Of a stretch of 64,000 nucleotides of DNA, positions 7,887 to 41,213 are shown piece after piece. The DNA is from Amoeboaphelidium protococcarum X5. Lineage: Eukaryota; Fungi; Aphelidiomycota. How positions within the stretch are numbered: the first letter of the stretch is position 1; every line of letters begins with the position of its first letter. Position numbers and translations under genes: made by a program. The DNA is taken from positions 37,413 through 101,412 of the forward strand of contig JALDTO010000135.1 of assembly GCA_023515725.1 (NCBI GenBank). The letters run 5' to 3'. The notes below the pieces were generated by a model. That model saw nothing but the letters and a program-made list of their open reading frames with translations, searched no databases and was not told the DNA's origin.

Positions 7887-8151
7887 ATTGATTATAAACA
7901 GCTAAATGATGCGAAAAATGCGGTTTCTTTGTCGGATACGGAGTTCGAGAAACGCAAAACCGCCTCGCAGTTTAAAATTACTAAACATAGAAAGTAAAAT
8001 GAAAGTTCCCATTAATATTTTAAATGATTTTTAATTTTTATTTTGTTTTGTAATTTTAAAAATAAATTCATTGCTATTTTGTTTCTTATCATGCACTATA
8101 TCCGCCTTATAATAGGGGACATCTTAACTCGAATTCATTTTTTGCAGCAAA

Positions 8152-9531
8152 ATGTCTTAAGAAATCGACTTGGAACAGGTACGGCAGTTAGTAAATTAAG
8201 GTTTGAAGCGCAAGGAAATTTTAGATACTCTAAATTCTAGTGGAACAATCTGCTCCAAGTCCAAATTGGACCGGTTTATGACTGAACATGGATTGAGTAC
8301 TGCTTTAAATAGAGCCACATTTGCGGATTAAAGTGAACATTGGATTGAAGAAGCTCGCCATCTAATTAATGGCGGGTCCACTTAACAATAATTATTGGAT
8401 TGGCTGAAATAGAAGCATAATATTTAAATGTCCTTAAGGACTTTGCAATCGATTTTGTCGCAGCATTAAATTGGAACGAGACATTGTGCGCTATCTCCTG
8501 TCGAAGTTTTGGATTTAGTGCATGTTGTAAATCAGGATGAAGGTGAAAGATTGGGAATTAGATCAACTACATAAGTCCTTCGTGAACTATCAGGCCAATA
8601 AGTATCTCGAGACATGGTTATGGTTTGCTAAAGATTCGACAATCCAGAGGCTGTGTAAATGCGTAAAAGGCGCAAGTTGAAACGCCGTGAATATTAAAAT
8701 GATGGTCCTAATTAAGTGTGGCATATAGATGGCTTCGATAAGCTGTCGTAGTTTGGCTTTGGAATAAGTGCGTGTGTAGATGGTTTTAGTAGGTATGTTG
8801 TGTTTAGTATGGTCGCAGATACGAATAGGCCCGCGCGTTACATACTGGAATATTTTCTGGATGCGGCTGACAAATGCAATGTTATGCCTGGAAAAGTTCG
8901 TGTTGATGGCGGAACTGAGAACAATTACATCAAGTAATTGCAAGAAATATTGGTAGGTGAGAACTCTTATATTGTGGGTTCATCCAATTTCAATACGCGT
9001 ATAGAAAGTTACTGGGGCAGATAGAATCATTATGGGCTTGAATATTGGATAGGAACGCTGAACAATCTTCACTTTGCAGGTTATTTTAATACCACGCTTT
9101 ATTCTCATAAGACAATTTCTCAGTATTGTTTTGGACATTATATCGCTGAGTGTTTAGATAAAATTACCACCTTGTGGAATTACCATAAGATTCGAAATCA
9201 AGGACAGCCCATCATGCGTTATCAAGTTCCCGAGATGTTTGATGGAGTAGAATGTGGTTTGGAGCCTCCTCAAGACATGCGTGATATGGCTATTCAATTG
9301 TTTGGACCAAGTACTATAGATATGAATGATAGGTTTAGAATTAATTACGCTAGGCATCTTATTGATGAAGTTGTTATAGAGAAAGGTTTTGATCAACTTA
9401 CCTTTGACAATTGTCAAGATGTGTTCAAGGCTTTAGTGTCCGATGGCGATCTCGTAAGCGCGCTGGATGCATTTAGAGATTAATTGTTGATAGCAGAATA
9501 GTAAGTGAGAGGGTAGGAAATTGCTTAGTGA
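8152..9531 (+). mobile_element. Intact IS481/IS3-like (rve-related integrase core) DDE transposase with two N-terminal HTH-like repeats, 459 aa
   Basis: Uninterrupted frame with TAR=Gln. GPNQVWHIDGFDKL, VDGFSR, PGKVRVDGGTEN, GSSNFNTRIESYW, WNYHKIR. The D-D-E triad is retained. Confidence 0.85.
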
Positions 9532-9616: not shown

Positions 9617-11632
9617 TCAATCCTCAGTCAAAGTTGGCAATTTCTTCTACGCAGCATTTTTAGCACGCGTATTAGGTCTTCTGCTAGACGGACGTATGTT
9701 TTTAACAATAGGATCCACCAACTTAATCTTAGATTTCTCCTTTACTATCTGCAAATCCTGAGTGGCTTGATTATTAACTTCTACCTGTTTAGACACAGAA
9801 GTTATGGAGACATCCGACTTCAATGATGTCTTCTACTATCCAAGAGGATTAGGAGCGGCCTATGCTGGAGATCCAAACACAGTGGACTCGAATTTATCCA
9901 TTAAGAGAGAATCTTCCATAATCTTCTCCATTACTAAAGACGGAATGGTCGCGACATCTAAATGCAAAGCCTTGCAAATCTAATTGCACTAGTGCATAAC
10001 GAAGAACTTCACAATTGCTGGTAAACCCATATTGCCAATACTGCAATCGGTGCCATTGACAGTGCACACCTAAAGATCTGTAAAGTGACACTTAGAGCCT
10101 TGAATATCAACTATCATTTACTCGTAGTTCTCCTTCTCAAACCAATAATAGGAGTAATGGGCAAAAGCCCAGGCCACTTCTTCACGAAAGTTCTCCTCAT
10201 AAGTCTGATCATCATCACAAATTTGCATAAAATGCTCGTTGTCGATATACTTCACAAATTGGCCATCTACGAAGGGTTCAACTGTCCATATCTTTGCTAG
10301 ATCCACCATATCACCAAATTCCTCATTTTATTTGTCTCTAATCTCCAGCATCACGCCAGCACAAACTCCACGCTACTCACCAGCAACCTATAGATATTCT
10401 TAACCCAGCAGCGTCTTAATCAATTCCGCGTCAAAATCTAGGAAGCACCTTTGAGCGCAAACAGAGTTTAATATTTCCCTAGCATGTAATCCATAATCAT
10501 CGTCATCCTTATCAATTGCGCACTTAAAGACTACTGGCAGATCTGGAAAAAACTTGACCAGAGATCCATTATAGTAGCATCTTTTTATATTCCCTTTGTT
10601 AGTCTTTCCTGCCAGATCTGGCATTCCAACTACTCCTGGATCCTCAGTGAACCAGGAGCCTGTTTCATAGTCGTAGACATGCACAACCACACTGCCTTAC
10701 AAGGAGCGCGTATTTTTTATTACACGCTGAGGGGACACCTTGGAAATGTTTTCAAACTAGCAAAACTTATTCTTATGTTCAATCTAACTATTTCTCGCAA
10801 CATTTGAACTGACAGGTATGATCGTAGACTCCTGCGCAGATTTGATCTTTTTGACAGGCTTGACAGGTTGAATAATAGGCTCATCTAAAGTACGCGTCGG
10901 TTCAACAATTTCAAAATCATCCTTATCCTGCATCTTCTCATCTGGCAAACCATACTAGTAATCAAAGTCCTCGACATTCAAAAAATTCAGCTACTGTAGA
11001 GACTCATAGTTTCTCTTTAAACTAGGATGCAATTACACGCGATTGCTTTCAACCAACGGAATCAAATATAGCACCTTATCCTTATTAGAGGTATACTTAC
11101 ATCCTGCCAATTGAATATTCTGGGTCCATTATATTACGTCAAAATCAACTCCAAATTAGGGGATTTGGTGGATTTGACTTTGTCCAATTGACGATTGCTC
11201 AACTTGATAGTGAAACAATGCACAAGCTTATGCTAAGACAGATTGATAATTGTCATTATACTTGTCAATCTAAATCATCTATGGGCCAACATTTTCCAGA
11301 CGCTTAAATTATCCAACCTTTGATCCTGAAATACAAGGGACAATGCTAATTTGCACCAGCGCGTTTTTACGCGTCAAACCTCTATTTCCACTACCAGGAC
11401 CGTTTCTATGAACAGGGGGCGGCGGCTTAGTCTGGTATCCACTGTGCAATCTATTTACCATTGACTCGGTTCTTGTCTGCACCGCAAGCTTTTTCTTTTA
11501 CTCAAATTGCATTTGTGAATGCATCAACTAGGCTTGCGCCTATTGCCAAGATTTACATCCAGCACAATGACAGTCCTCCCTTTTGAGTCCGGACGAATTG
11601 GGACATAACACATCTTACAACGGATTAAACAT
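9617..11632 (-). CDS. Alpha-kinase (eEF2K/MHCK family) with N-terminal Cys cluster, 671 aa
   Basis: WTVEPFVDGQFVKY, AFAHYSY, MIVDIQG, FTDLQV, GNMG, FFVMHQCNQICKALHL. N-terminal C-x10-CHCAGC. Single open frame. Confidence 0.88.
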
Positions 11633-34096: not shown

Positions 34097-34395
34097 ATGC
34101 AATAATCAGTCAATTAATTAGCGATTTCCCATTATCTCTTCATTTTATTGATACGATAACAAAGTAGTGATCATTCATTTTCATAGCGAGCAATGCTACT
34201 TCACCTCAGGGACATCACGTCTCGAATAACTTTCCTTTTGAGCGTGTCGATTAAAAGAAGCTCAAACGCGTCCCCAATCAGCAACCGAAAATAACCGAAA
34301 GGCGGAAACGTCTATCATTTTAATCTTTTCGTGGATCATCATCAATTCGGCTATCCTCATTATTGTTGTTCAGAGAATTAATTCAATAGTACAAT

Positions 34396-35028
34396 ATGGG
34401 AATTTCTAGAGATAGTCGCCACAAGCGATCCGCAACTGGTGCTAAGCGCGCCGCATACCGCAAGAAGCGTAAGTTTGAATTGGGACGTCAACCGGCAATG
34501 ACCAAGCTGGGTGCTCGTAAAGTGCACACTGTCCGTACCATGGGTGGGAATACCAAGCACCGTGCACTGCGTCTGGAGACTGGAAACTTCTCTTGGGGAT
34601 CAGAGGCGATTACTCGTAAGACGCGTATTATCGATGTTGTTTATAACGCTTCCAATAACGAGTTGGTGCGTACCAAGACTTTGGTGAAAAATGCTATTGT
34701 GCAGATTGATGCCGCTCCATTCCGTCAGTGGTGGGAGGCTCATTATGGTGAGGTTTTGGGTAAGAAGAAGAGAGCACAGGCCGCTGCAGCAGCTGAGGAG
34801 TCAAAGCAGGACGGTGCAGATTAGAAGAAGCAGTCGAGCCACGTCAAGCGCAAGATTGAGTCGCGTAAGGATGATGCTCACGTTGAGGCTGCTATCGATG
34901 ATCAGTTTGTCGCCGGTAGATTGCTCGCATGTATCTCCAGCCGTCCTGGTTAGACTGGCCGTTGTGATGGCTACATTCTTGAAGGTAAGGAGTTGGAATT
35001 CTACATCAAGAAGTTGAAGCACAAGTGA
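34396..35028 (+). CDS. RPS8: 40S ribosomal protein S8 (eS8)
   Basis: [15 protein letters not shown]...[23 protein letters not shown]. The Q of RPGQ is encoded by TAG. Ends TGA. Confidence 0.98.
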
Positions 35029-35166: not shown

Positions 35167-38100
35167 TCACGCTAATAATCTAGTTATTTTACCAACTCCT
35201 TTAGTTCTACCTTCTCTAAATAGCAAACGCTAGCCAACTTGTATGTATTCTGGATACTTCATGAAGCGAAATTTAACAAGCGCCCTGTCACCTGTTCTGA
35301 TAACATTTCTCTCAGCCAGGCTTTGAGAAGTACCAACGGCATCAGATTAAGACTAATTAGCAAAGTTATCAGCAGAGCCAGATTTTAATAGTTCACCACC
35401 AGCACTCTCAAGGATCTGCTTTTATGGGGTAATTGATAGAACGTAAGCCGCTTACCGCACATTTCCCACATGAACCATAGTTTAATAACATTTGCCGATA
35501 GTTGAACTGTGATACAGTACCAGAACTTCAGCCTCGAATACCTGTACAGCTTCAGGCTTCACATCTTTACCTAATAACACCATGCCTTTTCGCAAGTAGC
35601 TGCGCTTGATCTTTTTCAAAGCGAAGCATGCCGTCTAACCAGCACTAGCATATGGTACGTTGAGCCGCTTAATGTGAATAGATTTGATTTATGCCGGTAT
35701 AAACACACCGTTTGTATCAGGCCCAAGCTGGAGGGAGTCACCAACACGCACGGTGCCATTCAATAAAACACCAGATACAACGCAACCAACACCGGGAACG
35801 CTAAATGACTCTGTGATCTGGATATGAACAGATTTCTTTGGATCAAACTACTTGTATACTGGGAGAAGATTAATAAAACTCCTAAGTAGATCAACACCGA
35901 CACCACTGACATTGCTAATCTGGAATATAGGACATACGCGCTCAGACACGAACGTCTTGGTAGTTGATATGACATCACTCATTGAATTTATATAGATAGG
36001 AATCTTGCGACACCCGCTGCTCTTGAGAATCTTTGTCAACTACTTAGTGGTGGATTCCAAAATATTACCAGGACACATGTCAATCTTGGTGATGACGACA
36101 AACACTGGGACATTTAAAGCCAGAGCCAATCCTAGATGCTCCTTGGTCATACCTATAATGCCGGCATTAGATCCAATCATGAGCATCACATAATCAGGCA
36201 TACATCCAGTCATACCGAACACGGTGGTCTTCAGATATCTCTCGTGACCAGCCAAGTCGATAAACGAGATCATCTTAGCTGCCCGCCGGCTGATCTCTTC
36301 CCAAGTGAGCTTTCTACCAAAATTATCAGCTTATTTAACAACTTGCTTACCTGTACTGTCGAATCCCATAATCTCTAAACCAACTGACGATGTTCTACCA
36401 GTGTCTATCTCATGCTTATGTTTAAACAGTTTAACTCTAGCTGCGCCTCTTCCATCATCCAAGTCACTTGATGTCAGTACACCTAACGTTGTCGAATTAT
36501 GAGTAATTGTACAATCACTGAGCAATAACATATGATCACCATCAACTTCAAATCCGTAATACGCATCTTCGCCGTATTAGTCAATCGTAAAAGAACTTTG
36601 CTCCTACTGATATATATCCCAACTCTCAAGGTTTTGATTACAGATTGTGCTATCGACACATTAAAAATTTATTGATTTGAGAGCAGAGGTCAGCTTAATA
36701 CAAAAATCAGACAATGAATAGCCTTGTGCCGCAAACTATAGCGGCACCCTCCTTTGTAGAATAAGATAACCAGTGCGTAAACCACTTTGCCAATACAAAT
36801 CTTTGCTATTTCTCGCACTCTGACTTCCCTCGTCGGTGTAAACCTTAATTACGCGATCAAATATACTTACAGCTTCCAGGTCAGACAGCTATATTCGAGA
36901 TTAATACAAAATATCCTTTTCAAATATTTAAAAAAGCGTTCGAATAACGTTACTCTCAATAGCACAGTCTATGGATTAGAATTACTAACATCTACCCGAC
37001 AAGTAGCAAAATATAATGCCAGCAAACCAATATTCAAAGCACTTCAAAACATCCTTACGATATGCATAGTTCCTTACACACTTCTCCGAATCCAAGACCA
37101 CATTACTTTCACAATCAACAAAGGGAGTACTCAAATTAGCTTTGATGAGCAGGAGCTTGGACCTTAGTTCATGGGGAAGCGATAAAAATTCCACGACAGT
37201 TATCTTAAATCGTAATGATTAATCCCCCCGCAACTATAACACCAAAATATGATTACCAGTGACTAAAAAAGGAGAAAATTCTGAAGCCTACGGTATAATT
37301 CTATAAAGCATACCACTTCCACGGGTAAGAGATCCTGGCAAGACTGTTCTAATAGATCCATCAGGACCTAAAAGTTAATGCCCAACTTTAATATCTTGGA
37401 CAGCAATTGGCTTCAAATCAGCTGAGAGTAATTCGGTATCATAAGCGAAGCATTTTCCACTATCAACATTACCCACACATGCTACTCTTAATTCAATCAA
37501 ATGCGAAGCATCAGCATGAGCACTGTCCACTTGATGCCTTATTAAGAGATAAGCACTATACCGTTCATTCTCCTACTTATTGTAAACTACGGTAGCCACA
37601 AGACTGAGCTTCTGTGCTGCCTATTGGTATACTCTTGTCAAATGTTCCAGTTACTCTGATGTATTCAAAACGATACCATGCTACGAAGATCCCAGCTCGA
37701 GAACACATTCCCCATGGCCTTCCTCAATTTTACTCTAAATTAGCTCAGCTATCAAATCAACATCAGTAACATTATACTCCGTAGCAGTATCATATAATTT
37801 AGACGCGTGTCTCACATCCTAAGTAGACTATTATTACTAACTGCCACCGTCAGAGAAGAGCTACAATTACTTTTCCGCCAATATCCGTTCCTCAAGTCCA
37901 CCCTTATCTTTATGCTAAAGCTAATTATCCCCAAGCTGATTATCATCAACTATACTATTGCGCACAATCTCAGAGGTGAAATCAGATATAGAACTGAGAA
38001 GGTCCTGGTAATTTTATTTCTTATTCACAGCAGCAGATGATTACTTTGAGCTTTCGGCAATGAATCCAGGTTTCTGTCCTTACTGATGCCCATGATGATT

Positions 38101-38169
38101 ATGATTTCTATGACTTTGACCTTAATGTGACTTTTTAGAGCCTGTACTACTATAATTACTAGAATTCAT
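35167..38169 (-). CDS. GTPBP1: GTP-binding protein GTPBP1/2 (translational GTPase) precursor, 1000 aa including a 319-aa intein
   Basis: [13 protein letters not shown]|[80 protein letters not shown]. One open frame. Confidence 0.93.
36496..37452 (-). mobile_element. Intein (319 aa) inserted in the GTPBP1 P-loop
   Basis: Block [10 protein letters not shown]...IKVGHQLLGPDG, block B VTGNHILV, blocks [24 protein letters not shown] followed by +1 Ser. Removing it restores GNVDSGKST. Confidence 0.95.
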
Positions 38170-39542: not shown

Positions 39543-41213
39543 ATGACGGTTGAATAAGTGGCTGATAGTGGAGATAAGAAACTCCGTGCAGTGTTGAGAA
39601 TCGCTGAGCAGTATGGACATCCAGCCGTCACAATTCCTCTCTATGATGGATACGTCACGCTTGGGCGCAAAGCTGACATTGTTCTAGAGTATGAGTATAT
39701 ATCGAGTCTACACGCTGCTATTGAAATATGCGAGCATAATTATTGGCTGTAAGATTTGAACTCTACCAATGGCACCTACATTGGCCAGGATGTGCAGCCT
39801 CAAAAGGCGAAACGTTACTATCAAATCAAAGATGGCGATATGTTCAGACTGGGGCGCATGGACATATAATTTAAACTAGTTTCTGCATCATCAATGGAGC
39901 AAGCTTTAGCCGAGATGGAGTCTAATTTTGGCGATAAGAAGGCGAATATAATGTCGGCGGGTGACGATCCTCTGGGAGATGACGAAGAATTTTACTCGGT
40001 CCAGGAGCAGATTCCTGCATAAGCAAATTCCAACGTACTGTTGGTGGCAAACTCTTAGCAAGTCGATGATAAATAGGATTCTAATATGGTAGTAAATTCA
40101 GAAGTGAAGACGGAGGTTGCGCGCTCATAATCATCACATGCCTGCTCCACTCAAAGTCAATCTCGAAATACGTCTGAAGACGCTTAGATTGACGATTTGG
40201 AGGAGAAGATTGTCCCGCATCTGCACCTGACGCAAAATCCCAACTTTGCCATGCCAGCGACACAAGATTCTCTGCTGGAACCGATGCTCGACTCTGATCT
40301 GAAACAAGAGGAGGATAAGAAATTGTTGAAATCTGGTAACAAATAGAAAAAGAAAAAATCATCAGTAGTAGGTAAAGATGTTACGCGTAAGAAGTCTGCT
40401 GGTTCTTTGAAAGCCAGCACATCCAAGCAGGGGAATGTTGATGACTATGATTAAGGAGAGGAAGCGAAACGTGATAAATCACAGAAATCTACTAAGAGTT
40501 AGCGGAGAGCTACTAGAAAATTGTCTCAACCTCAAGTTCCTCAACCTATAGCAGCTGATGTGAAGTATAAAATATCCATTACAAAAATTGAACTGTGCGA
40601 TAAGGATAAAGTGGCATTATAGAGTCTTGGCATCTCGATAGAGCAAGATTTGTCACTGGCTGATTATCTGGTGACTAATAAAATTTATAGAACACCGCGA
40701 TTTTTATGTGCGATTAGCAAGGGAGTTTAAATTCTATCAGATAAGTGGTTAATCGACTCGATCAAGGACGGCGAAATTTTAGATCCAGCGGAATATTAAC
40801 TAAGAGACGTGCAGTTTGAGAAGGATAATGATTTTGTGCTTCAGGAATCTATTGAGAAGGGATTGCAATGTAAGAATGGATTTATGAACGGATATCAATT
40901 TGTGCTGGATGTTGAAGATTCCGCGTACAGTAATTGCGAAGAGGTGATTTTGGCTTCAGGCGGTGAAGTCTTGCAAGTTTTACCAATGCCTAGGAGACCC
41001 AATGTCTTACTTATCACTGATTCAACGCAGAGTTAATATGTGAGAGAGGCTCGTGATGCAGGATGGTAGGATTGTATCTATTCTAAAGAGCTTGTCATCA
41101 TGAGCGCGCTGAAACAGACGATGAATTTGGAAGACTTTCAGGTTGATGCTTCACGTAGTGCATCGTCCTAGAAATAAAATCAACGCAGAAGAAAGAAGCG
41201 CAAGATGTCGTGA
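39543..41213 (+). CDS. FHA plus tandem BRCT protein (MDC1-like DNA damage mediator)
   Basis: LGRKAD...ISSLHA...DLNSTNGTY (FHA). YLVTNKIYRTPRFLCAISKG..ILSDKWL and a second BRCT-like repeat. Confidence 0.85.

Follow-up and report, generated by a model that had tools for sequence, protein, structure and literature searches.

What is the 319-codon insertion that splits the nucleotide-binding loop of a translational GTPase gene in the aphelid Amoeboaphelidium protococcarum X5, and by what route did it arrive there? The gene lies on contig JALDTO010000135.1 (assembly GCA_023515725.1), within a stretch of 64,000 nucleotides (forward-strand positions 37,413 to 101,412), hereafter the window, whose own numbering is used throughout; all features of the gene are on the minus strand. 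We favor, with a probability of about 0.88, the answer that the insertion is an intein of class 1 and of the PI-SceI/Prp8 type, cis-splicing but deprived of its homing endonuclease, and fixed in the G1 loop (the Walker A motif) of a vertically inherited nuclear GTPBP1 gene.

The GTPBP1 precursor is a single open frame at 35167..38169, running under genetic code table 6 from a Met codon at 38169 to a TGA at 35167-35169, and the 1000-amino acid (aa) translation of 35170-38169 is 100% identical to database protein P0001. The N-extein (37453..38169, 239 aa) terminates inside the first part of G1, the residues GNVDSGK (37453..37473), which are split after the Lys. The insert (36496-37452) is 319 codons long and stays open under table 6, with not one TGA, and a TGA-free run of this length has a chance of about 0.001 computed from base composition. 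The standard code would place 14 TAA or TAG stops in the same interval, all read as Gln by table 6. These make up 14 of the 22 Gln codons of the intein, a proportion resembling that of its exteins, and this host-like usage indicates that the intein has long been resident in the aphelid lineage. The junctions are GNVDSGK↓CFAY...ITHN↓STTLGV, where arrows mark the splice points, and deletion of the 319 residues restores an intact Walker A motif. All the class-1 intein residues are found in the insert: Cys1 (37450-37452), block B of the form T65-x-x-H68 (T65-G-N-H68, 37249-37260), block F (YYGFEVDG) with His318 and Asn319 in the C-terminal splicing region (36496..36600), and Ser+1 (36493..36495). 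An earlier note on this DNA, made by inspection, had described the in-frame insertion at GNVDSGK↓ST and each of these residues, and all were located where it had put them. In an alignment of 41 inteins at the same site, Cys1, His68, His318 and Asn319 are unchanged. At the level of sequence, the interval 36496-37452 is confirmed as an intein in the GTPBP1 G1 loop.

The profile and fold evidence points to the same type of intein. Pfam Hom_end_hint (PF05203) covers the entire insert (residues 240-557 of P0001, 59.7 bits, E 5.6e-16, cut-off 32.1 bits) and exceeds its cut-off in both GTPBP1 copies of the genome, which bears out the Hint domain that the earlier note expected to be found. The generic Intein_splicing model (PF14890) and the NCBIfam intein models gave no match to the insert, and these misses may explain why the intein stayed unannotated. 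Full-length P0001 was needed for the Pfam result, the stop-free pieces alone giving only a weak C-terminal match, and a homologue search with the intein sequence alone returned the sister copy as its sole match. In the PDB, the Cryptococcus Prp8 inteins (E 3.5e-9) come nearest by sequence, along with PI-SceI. In the AlphaFold model, residues 1-110 and the final 35 of the intein mostly have a predicted local distance difference test score (pLDDT) above 90 and form the Hint strands, with 96-98 across the last 30 residues and 30-60 in the center; PI-SceI and Prp8 inteins are the top Foldseek matches (E ~1e-10). A model of the precursor segment was confident for the Hint part and the G domain, and not confident for either half of the P-loop.

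Together, the exteins make up a GTPase of the EF1 family that has G1-G4 and EF-Tu-type domains II and III (Pfam GTP_EFTU and GTP_EFTU_D2). Pfam and motif positions place domains II and III in the C-extein (35170..36495, 442 aa), together with G2 (DTGRT, 36391-36405), G3 (DLAG, 36247-36258) and G4 (TKID, 36079-36090). The G domain is 64-68% identical to named animal GTPBP1. In an extein tree of 103 proteins, computed without intein sequence, the host protein nests with the empty proteins of Rhizophlyctis, Hypoxylon, Wallemia and Mixia, with a value of 99 in the SH-like approximate likelihood ratio test (SH-aLRT). Because the extein is nested among empty fungal GTPBP1s, the host gene is taken to be cellular and vertically inherited. 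The host had previously been named as GTPBP1/2, of which the GTPBP1 half holds; GTPBP2 was rejected, since a separate, divergent GTPBP2-like paralogue exists and is empty. All the animal and fungal GTPBP1 orthologues that were retrieved are empty at the site.

Splicing competence is probable, judged from the conserved residues and established intein chemistry. The GTPBP1 gene would be expressed as a 1000-aa precursor with a split P-loop, in which Cys1 would undergo an N-S acyl shift aided by Thr65 and His68. The ester would then pass to Ser+1 by transesterification, cyclization of Asn319, aided by His318, would free the intein, and an O-N shift would leave a GTPBP1 of 681 aa in which the GNVDSGKST loop is whole. 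From this chemistry and that of P-loops, Ser+1 is predicted to act both as the splicing nucleophile and as the Mg-binding Ser of the ligated G1. Since 319 aa of the precursor separate the G1 Lys from the Mg-binding Ser, splicing should be required for GTP binding, and the dependence of GTPase activity on splicing suggested earlier is supported to that extent. The intein would persist because only its exact removal is tolerated; for the same reason, selection would preserve the splicing blocks while the center drifts.

A comparison of gene copies accords with this expectation. The genome has a second GTPBP1 copy on another contig, which is also occupied, its intein DNA being 80% identical to that of the window. 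A further named A. protococcarum protein, KAI3645912.1, has an intein 70% identical to the window intein, and that of KAI3636384.1 is identical to the intein of the genome's second copy. Between the two genome copies, the ratio of nonsynonymous to synonymous substitution rates (dN/dS) is 0.04 for the G domain, 0.17 for the splicing blocks and 0.51 for the 178 codons of the center. The N-terminal splicing region (residues 1-106, 37135..37452, pLDDT mostly above 90) has a value of 0.19 and the C-terminal region 0.11. The splicing blocks are conserved while the center is relaxed between the two copies. Across the three aphelid variants, the splicing regions are 86-97% identical and the center 56-73%, with no stops in any. 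It is formally conceivable that no protein splicing takes place, the insert being either an intron or dead sequence within a gene made non-functional, its function perhaps covered by the second GTPBP paralogue. A spliceosomal intron was rejected: the insert DNA ends TGC...AAT, without GT-AG or GC-AG borders at the exact or one-base-shifted junction, and the selection just described also contradicts it. A dead insertion in a dead gene fits poorly with a frame open in three diverged variants and with strong purifying selection on both the G domain and the splicing blocks, and we judge the absence of protein splicing to be very improbable.

The center of the intein (36601..37134, 178 aa) is most likely a decayed homing endonuclease, a reading that follows from its position and length and not from motifs. 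No LAGLIDADG signal remains in it: there is no Pfam match to Hom_end or LAGLIDADG (PF05204, PF14528), our own profile built from 74 long relatives scores the center at -1.3, which is in the range of shuffled sequence (other nuclear-type members score 70-156), and hhalign gives an endonuclease remnant a probability of 0.2%. A language-model search of the center returned LAGLIDADG clusters at 0.84, a weak lead only. With its endonuclease lost, the intein is probably no longer mobile.

If the intein is a long-term resident that no longer moves, how did its mobile ancestor reach this gene? The genome itself does not offer a source. Its eIF5B (two copies), eEF1A, eRF3-like, HBS1-like and mitochondrial EF-Tu genes all have a G1 site free of inteins, and searches elsewhere in the genome turned up neither another intein of the PI-SceI/Prp8 type nor a Hom_end domain; a present-day intragenomic donor was rejected on these grounds. 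We envisage a horizontal arrival by endonuclease-driven homing of a mobile ancestor, whose family would target DNA encoding the Walker A motif GK↓S/T and would circulate among giant viruses, phages and protists.

Occupancy of the site outside the aphelids is extensive. A query consisting of the intein end plus the C-extein matched about 30 proteins across both parts, and 74 distinct inteins of 136-470 aa, 3 of them aphelid, were collected at the same position of GTPBP1-like proteins. Twenty-four of the 74 are shorter than 200 aa, many retain Hom_end/LAGLIDADG domains, and the majority lie in giant-virus-like genes, with some in other eukaryote-like lineages. Among the best 80 loci of giant-virus metagenome-assembled genomes (GVMAGs), a sample biased towards occupied alleles, 8 are occupied, 60 empty and 12 unclassified. 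Some occupied contigs carry D5 primase, TFIIB or EsV-1-7 repeats. Indivirus ARF09802 has an intein at the GTPBP1 G1 site, and among the fold matches are a GTP-binding elongation factor of Harvfovirus and a Marseillevirus LCMAC201 GTPase. In one giant-virus GTPBP1 intein (P0002, L016:10001-12970), an AP2 domain precedes the LAGLIDADG endonuclease. At least two further occupied groups look nuclear. P0015 and P0165 are on eukaryote-like contigs and have a recognizable endonuclease region, and P0165 adjoins RIB43A; the exteins of P0019, P0153, P0163 and P0164 are sister to an Echinamoeba-like GTPBP1. The first 21 nucleotides of the P0165 contig (L103:1-21) look like a SMART cDNA adapter, in which case the intein would have been retained in a cDNA library; this contig is multi-gene, which makes the indication weak. 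Occupied and empty alleles are interleaved in the host tree, in which well-supported branches force at least 13 changes.

The family extends beyond GTPBP1. Related inteins follow the Walker A Lys of viral eEF1A-like proteins, of an eIF5B (L116), of a midasin-like ATPase, and of PIF1, RecD, DnaB and other helicases; outside the translational GTPases, 35 of 41 family inteins sit after GK. The archaeal IF2 inteins at the same motif belong to a different type. At nine eEF1A/eRF3-like loci (L106, L117, L121, L124, L132, L133, L135, L139 and L175), the same intein family was seen at GHVD.GK↓C...HN↓STTTG on AT-rich contigs that are probably of giant viruses. The midasin-like AAA ATPase (P0310 and P0338, L192:965-5896; P0338 has 5007 aa) has its intein at the first Walker A, LLEGSPGVGK↓C, and is possibly another unreported nuclear intein host. 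An archaeal locus, L146, has an intein at NIGTAGHVDHGK↓C in a host that resembles aIF2-gamma rather than IF2. One intein-bearing protein, P0033, is the only gene of a 3.1 kb contig that starts with GGGGTTTTGA-like repeats (L193:1-30) and resembles a telomere-capped nanochromosome.

Several observations weigh against our account of the intein and its arrival. Profiles do not detect the endonuclease ancestry of the center. The intein trees (125 rows x 104 columns and 54 x 102, with a single eIF5B intein, L116, and bootstraps that did not converge) are mostly unresolved and star-like, and they support no sister for the aphelid intein. The best plain identity, 49%, is to the phage-like helicase intein P0303, which lies outside the group sharing the insertion described below. 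L116 is not the sister of the aphelid intein in these trees.

Rare indels tell more about the origin of the intein than the trees do. A rare two-residue insertion within V-x-x-G-S (37333..37338) is common to a small eukaryote-associated group: in our set, it is present only in the aphelid inteins, P0165 and P0310 and, extended, in P0015, and all its bearers also have a longer loop ahead of block B. By eye, the Batrachochytrium eIF5B inteins OAJ41994 and OON05292 (supplement of PMC5784728) have the same two residues, and the insertion is absent from the Rhizophagus eIF5B and SRP (signal recognition particle)-alpha inteins, Prp8 and VMA1; the inteins printed in that paper were compared by eye only and left out of the trees. 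The best lead on the donor is a subgroup associated with eukaryotes, to which the chytrid eIF5B inteins and the GTPBP1 intein of another protist belong, and we regard it as an even bet.

The abundance of viral alleles makes a viral source attractive. An infecting giant virus could have passed on the intein by allelic homing out of its GTPBP1-like gene, or a P-loop intein of the phage type could have been the source. Giant-virus-like genes hold most of the same-site inteins, as in the GVMAG loci, Indivirus ARF09802 and the Harvfovirus fold match, the intein closest by plain identity belongs to a phage-like helicase, and viruses have been proposed as intein vectors (PMC10710043). Yet the two-residue insertion is in none of the viral GTPBP inteins examined, the sole viral-like sequence that the tree places as a sister is long-branched and has low SH-aLRT values (61 and 55), and the extein itself is not viral. 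A viral or phage source is accordingly put forward only tentatively.

The indels fit a eukaryotic GTPBP1 donor of the P0015/P0165 type, acting by allelic homing either directly or through a vector. P0165 and P0015 occupy the identical site, on eukaryote-like contigs and with their endonuclease region still recognizable, and they share both rare indels and an HxLVL motif with the aphelid intein. Approximately unbiased (AU) tests did not reject a clade of the aphelid intein with P0015/P0165/P0310 (p 0.16). The maximum-likelihood trees do not unite the aphelid intein with P0015/P0165, however, and the host proteins of that pair are not near the aphelid extein. Such a donor appears rather unlikely on balance.

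The earlier note had suggested that a nuclear eIF5B intein might have homed ectopically into the homologous G1 loop of GTPBP1. The indels give this suggestion some substance, for the eIF5B inteins of Batrachochytrium also have the insertion and the long loop before block B, and by eye they agree with the aphelid intein at about 33 of the 72 N-terminal residues, the best figure in the computed set being 36. A jump of this kind also seems to occur, as the L116 eIF5B intein and the P0019/P0163/P0164 GTPBP1 inteins cluster at 97/94, although compositional bias was flagged; a paralogue-to-paralogue eIF5B-GTPBP1 jump in an amoebozoan-like lineage is possible from these sequences. The contigs of L116 and of P0019/P0153/P0163/P0164 (L018, L104) are all GC-rich, and the inteins are all 319-324 aa. 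The AU tests did not reject a grouping of the aphelid intein and L116 (p 0.066). Against an eIF5B donor for the aphelid intein, both eIF5B copies of the genome are empty, the agreement of their DNA with the GTPBP1 site (19-20 of 36 bases) does not exceed that of eEF1A or eRF3, and the Rhizophagus eIF5B intein is without the insertion. The insertion is also in another protist's GTPBP1 intein and in the midasin-like intein; an intein lies at this very position in dozens of GTPBP1-like genes of giant viruses, making allelic homing available; and a shared indel, here with chytrid sequences compared outside any tree, gives no direction. What stands of the suggestion is the shared insertion; a specific eIF5B origin is not established, and we consider it unlikely.

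Exact intein loss is rare without homing cycles. An ancient GTPBP1 intein, inherited vertically and lost from most lineages, would account for the several eukaryote-like lineages occupied at the same site, and the long stem of the aphelid intein, with its host-like use of TAA/TAG for Gln, does make it old in its lineage. The GTPBP-site inteins are not one clade, though; starred branches force at least 5 changes among them, and the retrieved animal and fungal orthologues are all empty. Ancient vertical inheritance is improbable.

A more general model takes horizontal arrival by homing as the starting point. The G1 GK↓S/T of translational GTPases may be a repeatedly invaded homing hotspot, in which one family of relaxed specificity moves across P-loop nucleoside triphosphatases (GTPBP1, eIF5B, eEF1A-like factors and others) from a giant-virus reservoir, with at least three independent colonizations of nuclear GTPBP1 and at least one jump between eIF5B and GTPBP1. 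The evidence for and against this hotspot seems to us about equally balanced. If it is correct, the intact endonucleases of the family (P0165, P0015, ARF09802) make ectopic homing directly testable.

GTPBP1 is apparently new as an intein host and insertion site, one common to the nuclear genes of several eukaryotes and to many giant viruses. The earlier note had proposed this novelty, and no paper combining 'intein' and 'GTPBP1' was found in the searchable literature, a coverage that excludes InBase and Dataset S1 of PMC10710043; titles and abstracts on Amoeboaphelidium and aphelids mention nothing of a GTPBP1 intein. The text and supplements of Green et al. 2018 (PMC5784728) do not mention GTP. 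Zinoviev et al. 2019 (PMC6582330) align Indivirus ARF09802, and the word intein is absent from their text and supplement. Gallot-Lavallee et al. 2023 (PMC10710043) report Anaeramoeba inteins in 55 eukaryotic orthologous groups (KOGs), with P-loop homing in unrelated proteins, and propose an SRP-receptor/IF2 jump, non-allelic spread and virus-mediated transfer. GTP and GTPBP are absent from the main text of PMC10710043, and overlap with its Dataset S1 is possible. The short list of eukaryotic nuclear hosts from which the earlier note argued is out of date in view of the 55 KOGs.

In comparison with known systems, the aphelid intein shares its Hint subfamily, fold, Cys1, TxxH-type block B and His-Asn end with the Saccharomyces cerevisiae VMA1 (PI-SceI) and Cryptococcus Prp8 inteins. 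Both of those use Cys+1 and their hosts differ from GTPBP1. PI-SceI has kept its active LAGLIDADG endonuclease and the Prp8 mini-inteins have had theirs deleted outright, whereas the aphelid intein retains an unrecognizable center of about 180 aa. The eIF5B/IF2 inteins of Batrachochytrium and Rhizophagus (PMC5784728) are likewise nuclear, of the Hom_end_hint type and placed after the G1 Lys of a translational GTPase, the former sharing the two-residue insertion by eye. The Rhizophagus SRP-receptor-alpha intein is another nuclear Hom_end_hint type, its site annotated in the same paper as Walker A GK-S. In contrast to these fungal inteins, the aphelid one is in GTPBP1 (EF1 family), has Ser+1 instead of Thr+1, is shorter and has no recognizable endonuclease. 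The Anaeramoeba inteins of cluster 15 and of P-loop cluster 1 (PMC10710043) offer a parallel for P-loop homing into unrelated proteins and non-allelic spread; P-loop cluster 1 is class 3, unlike the class 1 aphelid intein. The giant-virus GTPBP1-like GTPases (PMC6582330) belong to the same host family, with ARF09802 occupied at the site, but the aphelid extein is cellular and not viral.

The surprise is limited, since the mechanism is standard and earlier publications describe both P-loop hopping and viral spread. Nuclear inteins are rare, and their route into new host genes is still an open question. Occupied and empty alleles occur together at this site, as do live and decayed endonucleases, and they offer a natural system in which to compare allelic with ectopic homing and to study virus-to-nucleus transfer. 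There is also an annotation gap, as already studied viral 'GTP-binding elongation factors' such as Indivirus ARF09802 are intein precursors.

Inteins were also seen in other genes of the aphelid genome. The largest subunit of RNA polymerase III has an intein of about 420 aa in both genome copies (L009 and L012, G000:C212:565327-566361 and C264:836788-837822), which starts with Ser and ends Phe-Asp before Thr. An RPC2 intein is present at EMERD↓C...HN↓C in both copies (L010 and L011, G000:C192:529124-530410 and C221:44083-45369), and a partial third RPC2 intein piece lies downstream on C192 (L014, C192:533774-533974). In the window, the neighbors of GTPBP1, identified by eye, are ribosomal protein S8 (34171-35028, plus strand) and an FHA-domain protein (39543-41210, plus strand), an ordinary nuclear context. 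Farther away, an integrase-like frame at 7906-9528 on the plus strand, with a WHIDG...DGFSR motif, faces a long frame at 9620-11632 on the minus strand, an arrangement that by eye is transposon-like.

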